Shown: positions 57,583 through 59,236 of the stretch, one piece after another
How the letters are laid out: each line of letters begins with the position of its first letter
How positions within the stretch are numbered: position 1 is the first letter of the stretch
NCBI GenBank assembly: GCA_023334545.1
Contig: JAADVB010000013.1
Span: 62,001 to 126,000 of the forward strand
Direction: 5' to 3'
DNA from: Salisapilia sapeloensis CBS 127946
Taxonomy: Eukaryota > Protista > Oomycota
DNA length: 64,000 nucleotides
The notes under the pieces: generated by a model
Databases searched by the model: none
Told to the model about the DNA's origin: nothing
Seen by the model: the letters and a program-made list of their open reading frames with translations, nothing else
Translations under genes and position numbers: made by a program

Positions 57583-59236
57583 AATGCGCTATCTTTTCCT
57601 CTTACATTTATACCAACACGAAATTTACCATGATGAAGCACATCCCCCTATACATTGCTAATCAGAGAATAGAGGTGCCAATTAGCTTATTTTTTAGCAT
57701 CGTATGCAGATAGTTTATGTCTTACAGATGCTAAAGGCAGAGTGTCTTAGGGATCCGCAATGAAAGCTTCATCTCGGTGTCATTTCCGTTTTTATCCGTG
57801 CCTTTGTTGTAGAACAAATTTCTACGTAATAGACGTCAAATTTGTCCCTTCATAATTAAGAGAGAAAATGCACAAGACTTACAAATACTTCAGCCTCGAA
57901 AGCAAGACGTAGTAGTTTTTTACTGTTATGATATGACTGTCCAGTGTAGATGACTGGCTCTGGAACAAACTTCTCTCCGAACAATTTGTTGTGCCGAAGG
58001 TACCTAGAGAATAGATAGTGCCCACGAGTTGTGCAGTGTAAAAGTGAAAAGTCTCCTTTATCATAAAACATGCTGTCGTACATATTCTCGATCGCTAGAA
58101 TATGTGCGGTAATCTTGGACAAGGCATTGTGTTGCATGAACCTGCACAGAATTAATTTTAGTGAAAATGAAGTACCATGCTGGTAGAAAGTAGATACGCA
58201 CACTTCCTTCAAGCCGGGCCTTACGCCACCCCATTCTACTAGTTTCATTTGGTCCGCGATACTGTAAAGTGTTAGCTCTTGCGTATCGAAACTTGAGTAT
58301 TTAAATATATCTTCTGACAGTTTAGTCACCGAGCCGAGTGTATGGGGATGGGGATCGTCAAGAAATTTGATGATGTTGTGACTCAAATTGCTATTCGAAT
58401 CGTTCAGTCGCATACTCAGAAGAGAAACAAAAGCTACGCACATGTTCTGAAGATGCTCACACTTGTTTCCACGCAAACTCTTTTCCGTCAGCATATTGGT
58501 CGGCAGATCTCTGTAAATCATACAAATGACCACTGCCTATTTAGGTGTCTTACGAAAAGTGTCTTACAAGTCTTTTAGCTTCGTGCTTGCACAGTCAAAA
58601 TCGCTGAGTTGATTCTTCTGAAAGTTCCTAGGTTGGTCGTGAGGTCTTTGTTATGTGAATGAAGCATTCGGTAGCTGAGGTCTTACGCCCAAATGAGGTT
58701 GGGCATCTTCGCATCGAAGTTGGAGACCATGTTGACTTGTATATCTCTTTCCAAGTACCGACAATCAAATCTATATCGTAATGTTGATCATAAATGGTTG
58801 CCTACAAGTACTCAAGATTCTCCCATTCGCGAGTAATATATTTCAGTTTGCCTTCATGGTTTTGTCTATTCATACGATAGAGGATTCAGATACAAAATTT
58901 GAAGCCGGAGCATTCACAACAAGATTTACAGCTTGCGAAGTTTTGGGAAGTTGACTGAATCCAGCTTCTTGAGTAATGCATCGCTCATATATCTATATAG
59001 ATCATCGTTAGTCCGAGTATTGTTTAAGATCACCCATGACTATATAAGACGTACAGCTCTTCCAGATGGGGAAACTTTCCGTGTATCTTTTGGATAGGAT
59101 TCGAACGAATGTAGCTACACAGACAAAGTAAGTCGACGTCCATTCACCGAGCGTGTTTCCTAAGTTACTATACATAACTTTGGCGTGTTGGAACTGCGTT
59201 GCATTGAGCACTTTGATGCTGTTTTTACTCAGGTTA
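57583..59236 (-). pseudogene. Leucine-rich-repeat gene with mostly one LRR per exon (13 phase-2 symmetric exons); 3' part inactivated
   Basis: Exons 59236-59174, 59114-59055, 58992-58930, 58865-58806, 58746-58687, 58627-58568, 58510-58442, 58390-58319, 58261-58202, 58141-58082, 58003-57883, 57821-57726 and 57657-57583. Introns are 51-78 bp GT-AG, and every split codon is L, I, V, M or A. Lesions: AG>AT acceptor before the first listed exon, a frameshift in the 121-nt exon, and TAG codons at 57733 and 57650. Confidence 0.85.

Follow-up and report, generated by a model that had tools for sequence, protein, structure and literature searches.

Among the closest described counterparts of the gene analysed here are the ROCO (LRR-ROC-COR) genes of the brown algae Ectocarpus and Saccharina, in which each leucine-rich repeat (LRR) occupies one exon of a uniform 72 bp and the introns are in phase 2 (PMC3341825, PMC11378527). 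A similar arrangement is present in Tetrahymena, where LRR genes are made of 90-bp exons and over 96% of the introns are in phase 2 (PMC6564038). In the vertebrate genes for the LH, FSH and TSH receptors, as far as these are cited in one of the brown-alga papers, one LRR is encoded per similar-sized exon and all introns are in phase 2 (PMC11378527). From oomycetes, LRR receptor-like kinases (PsRLKs and SSRK1) with 1-6 LRRs per protein have been reported (PMC8254037, PMC3268121, PMC11551405). The LRR receptor kinase SSRK1 of Phytophthora sojae binds elicitin-sterol complexes, and elicitin and kinase together reportedly act as a sterol sensor (PMC11551405). Exon structure goes unmentioned in two of the oomycete receptor kinase papers (PMC8254037, PMC3268121), and a literature search found no description of the exon structure of oomycete LRR genes.

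Here, we analysed a window of 64,000 nucleotides from the oomycete Salisapilia sapeloensis, to which all coordinates below refer unless stated otherwise. An initial annotation of this DNA had proposed that an LRR gene escapes the listing of open reading frames at 59236-57583, and this was borne out. Reading of the minus strand of this span revealed short exons in a row, with one leucine-rich repeat of about 20 amino acids per exon, and all ten repeat peptides (10/10) of the annotation could be placed on the minus strand from 59236 to 58082. GT..AG borders are present at every peptide-bearing exon except the first one, E1, which is preceded by TAT and not by AG. The introns are 51-78 nt long and split codons such that two bases lie 5' of the intron and one base 3' of it (phase 2). 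The codon interrupted in this way, after its second base, specifies the hydrophobic residue that opens the LxLxxN core; from junction to junction this residue is I, L, L, L, A, L, I, V and M, always at the same position of the core.

The predicted exon lengths, E1 to E13, are 63, 60, 63, 60, 60, 60, 69, 72, 60, 60, 121, 96 and 75 nt, and the repeat units measure 20-24 amino acids. The layout of one repeat per symmetric exon, with the same intron phase and the same position in the repeat, was found for E1 to E7 and for E10, and six of the boundaries are confirmed by RNA. As predicted, E1 to E10 are all symmetric 2-2 exons. Exceptions to one repeat per exon are E8-9, which holds three units, and E11, which holds two. 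The claim that all introns are in phase 2 stands for the predicted boundaries of E1 to E10 and breaks down at the intron between E11 and E12, which is in phase 0 in the transcribed frame. CTAAC or CTAAT, announced as branch points in several introns, do occur, though in only two of the eleven.

Evidence for splicing came from four small runs (X1 to X4) that are labelled 'RNA?'; they belong to three samples from a single study of this organism, dating from 2019. Their contigs are identical to the window at 100%, and they carry seven of the predicted joints exactly, all of them GT..AG on the minus strand: E5/E6 (intron of 59 nt), E6/E7 (57 nt), E7/E8 (51 nt), E9/E10 (60 nt), E10/E11 (78 nt), E11/E12 (61 nt) and E12/E13 (68 nt). 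Five consecutive introns out of these seven are removed in a single contig of 540 nt. The unspliced stretch is fully present, in all its sequence words, in a DNA run from 2022 (X5), so that the joints are due to splicing rather than to another genomic copy. These joints also dispose of the suspicion that the exon pattern arose by chance. We conclude that the gene is real, is transcribed at low depth and is spliced mainly as predicted.

The transcripts cover the array from E5 to E13. E5 (58687..58746, minus strand as all exons of the gene, 60 nt) carries one LRR and is joined to E6, and a contig of run X1 starts exactly at its first base, 58746. E6 (58568..58627, 60 nt, one LRR) is joined at both flanks in two runs, and both flanks are likewise joined for E7 (58442..58510, 69 nt, one LRR), E10 (58082..58141, 60 nt, one LRR), E11 (57883..58003, 121 nt, about two units) and E12 (57726..57821, 96 nt). 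For E13 (57583..57657, 75 nt, LRR-like) the joint to E12 was found, in a contig whose last base is 57583; the genome continues with GTAAGT. The annotation had placed a further intron between exons 8 and 9, at 58318-58262 with the donor GTCAGA. It was rejected, since this stretch is exon sequence in contigs of three runs (X1, X3, X4), among them the contig that is spliced at five other introns, and E8 and E9 consequently form one exon of 189 nt (E8-9, 58202..58390). This exon holds units of 24, 20 and 19 amino acids, keeps the frame without a stop, and has a canonical core in the first of its three units only. With this correction the span 59236-57583 contains 12 exons, five of which (5/12) are exactly 60 nt long, instead of the 13 and six proposed earlier; the short-exon row as such and seven of the predicted junctions stand, whereas the E8/E9 junction is refuted.

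The 5' third of the array, E1 to E4, is represented by no contig in the four RNA runs and is given here as read from the sequence: E1 (59174..59236, 63 nt), E2 (59055..59114, 60 nt) and E3 (58930..58992, 63 nt), each with one LRR, and E4 (58806..58865, 60 nt) with one degenerate LRR. The intron that follows E4 has weak splice sites (GTAGGC..AAAG), and a contig of run X2 extends 43 nt into it, indicating partial retention. As a separate observation, the lengths of four RNA-confirmed introns in a row (58004-58567; 57, 51, 60 and 78 nt) are divisible by three. Three of the four lack an in-frame stop, which creates a read-through ORF of 225 amino acids at 57856-58533. With one gene to go by, the multiples of three may be coincidental; alternatively, they may point to a tolerance of intron retention.

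That the product is a genuine LRR protein is indicated by several findings. The spliced frame of E1 to E11 is open over 268 codons, while the other two frames contain 12 and 16 stops. The strict core LxxLxLxxNxL occurs seven times in the 268-aa spliced product and not at all in the other two frames; 5000 shuffles gave 0.43 occurrences on average and 4 at most. A profile of the repeat unit matched six repeats of the LRR protein AMIGO-1 (2xot) in the PDB weakly (E 0.088). A second profile, 16 aa long with the exon junction at its centre, was run against 392 ORFs of the window and of two Pythium loci. Its best match other than to itself was weak but specific (E 0.003) and fell on an LRR gene of Pythium oligandrum (L001 15936-17872), the only gene in this set of 392 ORFs that carries a Pfam LRR mark. 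This gene is not cassette-built, is almost intron-free and is unrelated in sequence to the LRR gene of the window; it encodes 605 amino acids, has about 120 nt of introns and lies 5 kb from the Pythium orthologue of a PDZ gene that is situated downstream of the Salisapilia LRR gene. Among the language-model neighbours of a real exon of 62 amino acids, those with names belong mostly to LRR clusters, at weak scores of only about 0.46. Pfam at E<=1 yielded no match for the unspliced 225-aa read-through ORF, for the 62-aa exon or for a 79-aa ORF.

Searches for homologues were run with unspliced queries, and their negative outcome is weak evidence of absence. A word-indexed search with the unspliced 225-aa read-through ORF returned no match from an index limited to proteins of at most 394 amino acids. 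With the same ORF, phmmer found two matches, an insect protein and a metagenomic one, among 1.84 billion representatives, and both were discarded as spurious repetitive proteins by their Pfam marks and names. A protein atlas search returned nothing for the 225-aa ORF and only weak LRR leads for the 62-aa exon.

How does this locus compare with the systems described above? Like the brown-alga ROCO genes, it belongs to a stramenopile and consists of a tandem array of symmetric LRR exons with one repeat each (PMC3341825, PMC11378527). It differs in exon size, which is 72 bp (23-24 amino acids) in brown algae and 60 nt (20 amino acids) here, and in the position of the introns: the brown-alga exon starts well upstream of LxLxxN by the papers' description, whereas the intron in Salisapilia falls at the first L of this motif. 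The different intron position probably reflects an independent origin. Moreover, the brown-alga exons are alike enough for dS to be calculated and come with shuffling and splice variants, while the Salisapilia exons have no nucleotide similarity and are spliced consecutively. The brown-alga proteins possess a ROC-COR domain. ROC-COR GTPase domains are absent from the Salisapilia gene, the transcribed frame of which ends after the LRR units.

With Tetrahymena the gene shares tandem exons of exact length, almost exclusively phase-2 introns and the 2+1-base junction codon (PMC6564038). It is set apart from the ciliate case, with its 90-bp exons, thousands of young genes and detectable clonal expansions, by 60-nt exons, old, diverged cassettes and a broken copy. 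The glycoprotein-hormone receptors, as summarized in the source cited above, are alike in their phase-2 introns and are the textbook example of an LRR domain that grew by exon duplication; they are unlike in that this domain is fused to a 7-TM part, that the genes are single and conserved and that the repeats have about 24 amino acids. Finally, the oomycete LRR receptor-like kinases come from the same group of organisms and have extracellular LRRs of the same LxxLxLxxNxL type, yet in the Salisapilia gene neither a transmembrane segment nor a kinase was found downstream. Taken together, this is a known design in a new lineage and with a new exon size, without the exon similarity and the isoforms of the brown-alga case.

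The symmetry of the array is lost in E11, the 121 nt of which are not divisible by three. An assembly error as the source of this length was rejected, given that RNA of two runs matches the genome in E11 with no indels. Owing to the length of E11, the transcribed frame leaves this exon in phase 0 and runs into the stop codon TAA at 57794-57792 in E12, about 277 codons from the start of E1. Both E12 and E13 carry stops in every frame. In another frame they retain LRR-like cores with the junction residue at the usual position of the repeat, interrupted by TAG at 57733-57731 in E12 and TAG at 57650-57648 in E13, and their lengths of 96 and 75 nt are cassette-like and multiples of three. In the RNA, which is of low depth, the TAA is followed by at least one confirmed exon junction and by a probable second one. 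Further downstream, a motif scan detected one more candidate LRR cassette (57457..57511, minus strand, borders approximate), outside the RNA cover, with the core IxLxxNxLxxM, and nothing else. The ORF listing contains no minus-strand ORF of more than 64 amino acids between 55300 and 57580. Neither this listing, which shows only short ORFs, nor the motif scan revealed a transmembrane segment or a kinase downstream of the LRRs. The label 'receptor' given in the annotation is therefore unsupported here, no transmembrane or signalling domain having been found and the frame being lost in E11. A 277-aa product made of LRRs only could be functional all the same.

At the other end of the gene, sequence and hydropathy suggest a first exon at 59408..59516 on the minus strand, upstream of the RNA-covered part, that begins with ATG and ends in phase 1 at the donor GTATGA. 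Its predicted product has a hydrophobic N-terminus and a cluster of cysteines, CCxxxxC. A hydrophobic N-terminus combined with a cysteine cluster is common in secreted LRR proteins. A second predicted exon, E0 (59292..59355, minus strand, 64 nt), likewise outside the RNA cover, would encode a weak LRR-like unit and would end in phase 2 at the donor GTAAGT. The predicted intron between E0 and E1 (59237..59291, minus strand, 55 nt) starts with GTAAGT and ends with TAT where AG is expected, and an in-frame AG is available 9 nt inside E1. Judged by these letters, the acceptor of E1 is defective.

The neighbourhood of the gene agrees with the oomycete setting that had been proposed. On the same strand, 614 bp upstream, lies an elicitin-like gene (60131-60811, minus strand; PF00964, E 3.7e-11), and for the downstream PDZ gene the top-ranking matches come from Pythium oligandrum and [Pythium] brassicae, with 35-40% identity. 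Elicitins are typical of oomycetes, and elicitin-like genes are numerous in them. The elicitin-like protein has a signal-peptide-like start, a tail rich in Ser, Ala and Asp and a hydrophobic C-terminus; a homologue search with it returned no match, being swamped by low-complexity words. Synteny was assessed at the loci of the PDZ orthologues from Pythium oligandrum and from a Logan assembly. In neither of them did tblastn with the spliced product detect a related LRR gene near the PDZ orthologue, and the order of genes in Pythium is different.

The other ORFs of the window are long and mostly uninterrupted, which makes a gene with at least 12 introns an outlier. Two conserved housekeeping proteins, exportin-1/CRM1 and an eEF1A-like GTPase (12790-15708, minus strand, and 4075-5844, plus strand, respectively), are each encoded by a single long ORF in these intron-poor surroundings. 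Two transposase ORFs are present at 1794-3770 (plus strand) and 10661-12496 (minus strand), one of the MULE/MuDR type with a SWIM finger and the other of the Tc5/pogo type (DDE_1). An intronless ORF at 62529-63641 (plus strand) has both domains of the S66 LD-carboxypeptidases (PF02016, PF17676). This family is mostly bacterial, and the gene may have been acquired horizontally. The contigs of the DNA run X5 amount to about 24 million letters, compared with 86-88 million in two other organisms of the same study, and this may point to an unusually small genome by oomycete standards.

The explanation that we favour, with a probability of roughly 65%, is that the locus holds a real multi-intron gene of weak expression, which is truncated, probably decaying and one of the members of a multi-copy family of cassette-LRR genes. 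The protein would be made only of short LRRs of 20-24 amino acids. Its array would go back to serial duplications, long past, of a cassette that measured about 120 bp (a 60-nt exon plus an intron of about 60 nt), and introns would have been lost in places, giving rise to the exons of 189 and 121 nt; the three and two repeats held by E8-9 and E11 suggest such intron loss. The exons are spliced consecutively, and the frame shift caused by the 121-nt exon would have left two or three further LRR-like cassettes as spliced, untranslatable 3' exons. The first LRR exon would also have lost its AG acceptor. Provided that the predicted leader exists, the intact members of the family probably act as extracellular binding proteins.

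The most serious alternative, which we regard as unlikely though well worth weighing, is that the gene is intact and functional and encodes a small secreted protein made of LRRs alone. Translation would then end naturally at the stop in E12, the 3' exons would be an intron-bearing UTR and E1 would be spliced via the inner AG. Such a gene would fit the frame that stays open over 13 repeats, the transcription and correct splicing in three samples, the predicted hydrophobic N-terminus with its cysteine cluster and the in-frame AG within E1. It is opposed by the exons behind the stop, which with their cassette lengths, their LRR-like cores in another frame and a stop in each look like former coding sequence. 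The location of the TAA upstream of confirmed and probable exon junctions also speaks against it, as does intron 4 with its weak sites and partial retention. Our favoured reading, for its part, is opposed by the outcome of two large protein searches, in which no homologue turned up that could serve as an outgroup and document a formerly longer 3' frame, by the missing Pfam LRR match in the unspliced pieces and by the missing RNA contigs in the 5' third.

The initial annotation had gone further and placed the gene in a hypervariable recognition family that is now diversified by exon skipping, alternative splicing or shuffling between copies. The symmetric 2-2 exons E1 to E10, the skipping or duplication of which would be neutral to the frame, and the brown-alga precedent (PMC3341825, PMC11378527) lend this idea its appeal. 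At this locus, however, neither hypervariability nor alternative splicing nor ongoing exon shuffling finds support. All seven joints (7/7) link neighbouring exons and none of the four runs contains a skipping joint, in low-depth short-read contigs that may miss rare isoforms. Neither Tandem Repeats Finder nor a repeat finder for dispersed families detected nucleotide repeats among the cassettes. Exons and introns lack mutual nucleotide similarity, and the 60-nt exons compared in register have a mean identity of 38% and a maximum of 45%. The proposed check for paralogues by tBLASTn, carried out on the 64-kb window with the spliced product, found this product itself only. The copy is, furthermore, broken. 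From the missing similarity between cassettes and the exclusively consecutive joints it follows that the array is old and spliced in order, and on sequence grounds the periodicity of about 120 bp is to be seen as a relic of old duplications and not of recent shuffling. We therefore consider present-day hypervariability very improbable. By analogy with the sterol sensor of Phytophthora sojae, the LRR protein might also be conceived as a kinase-less partner of the adjacent elicitin-like protein in a two-gene extracellular sensing module, but despite the PF00964 gene 614 bp upstream on the same strand and the binding of elicitin-sterol complexes by SSRK1 (PMC11551405) this is scarcely credible, adjacency being the sole link and likely by chance with elicitin-like genes so numerous, and the LRR gene being truncated.

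A probable relic that shows no sign of hypervariability is, taken alone, of modest interest. What the locus does establish is that genes composed of micro-exons exist and are spliced in an oomycete with otherwise nearly intron-free genes, and that they are invisible to a listing of ORFs. Tentatively, we propose that a family of extracellular LRR proteins, sizeable and for the most part unannotated, may lie concealed in the intron-poor genomes of oomycetes; it would be built from 60-nt phase-2 cassettes, which gene predictors miss, and could include the ectodomains of LRR receptor kinases. Such a family would experience birth-and-death turnover of cassettes and genes, and the present locus would be a dying copy. 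If this is true, the published LRR repertoires of oomycetes and their repeat counts (1-6 per receptor kinase) are underestimates. Should similar loci prove real, inventories of oomycete surface receptors will need re-annotation with splice-aware repeat models, which bears on the sensing of hosts and of sterols. The locus also makes oomycetes the fourth lineage in which LRR arrays grew out of a phase-2 exon cassette, and it is relevant to the question of whether this design arises repeatedly.
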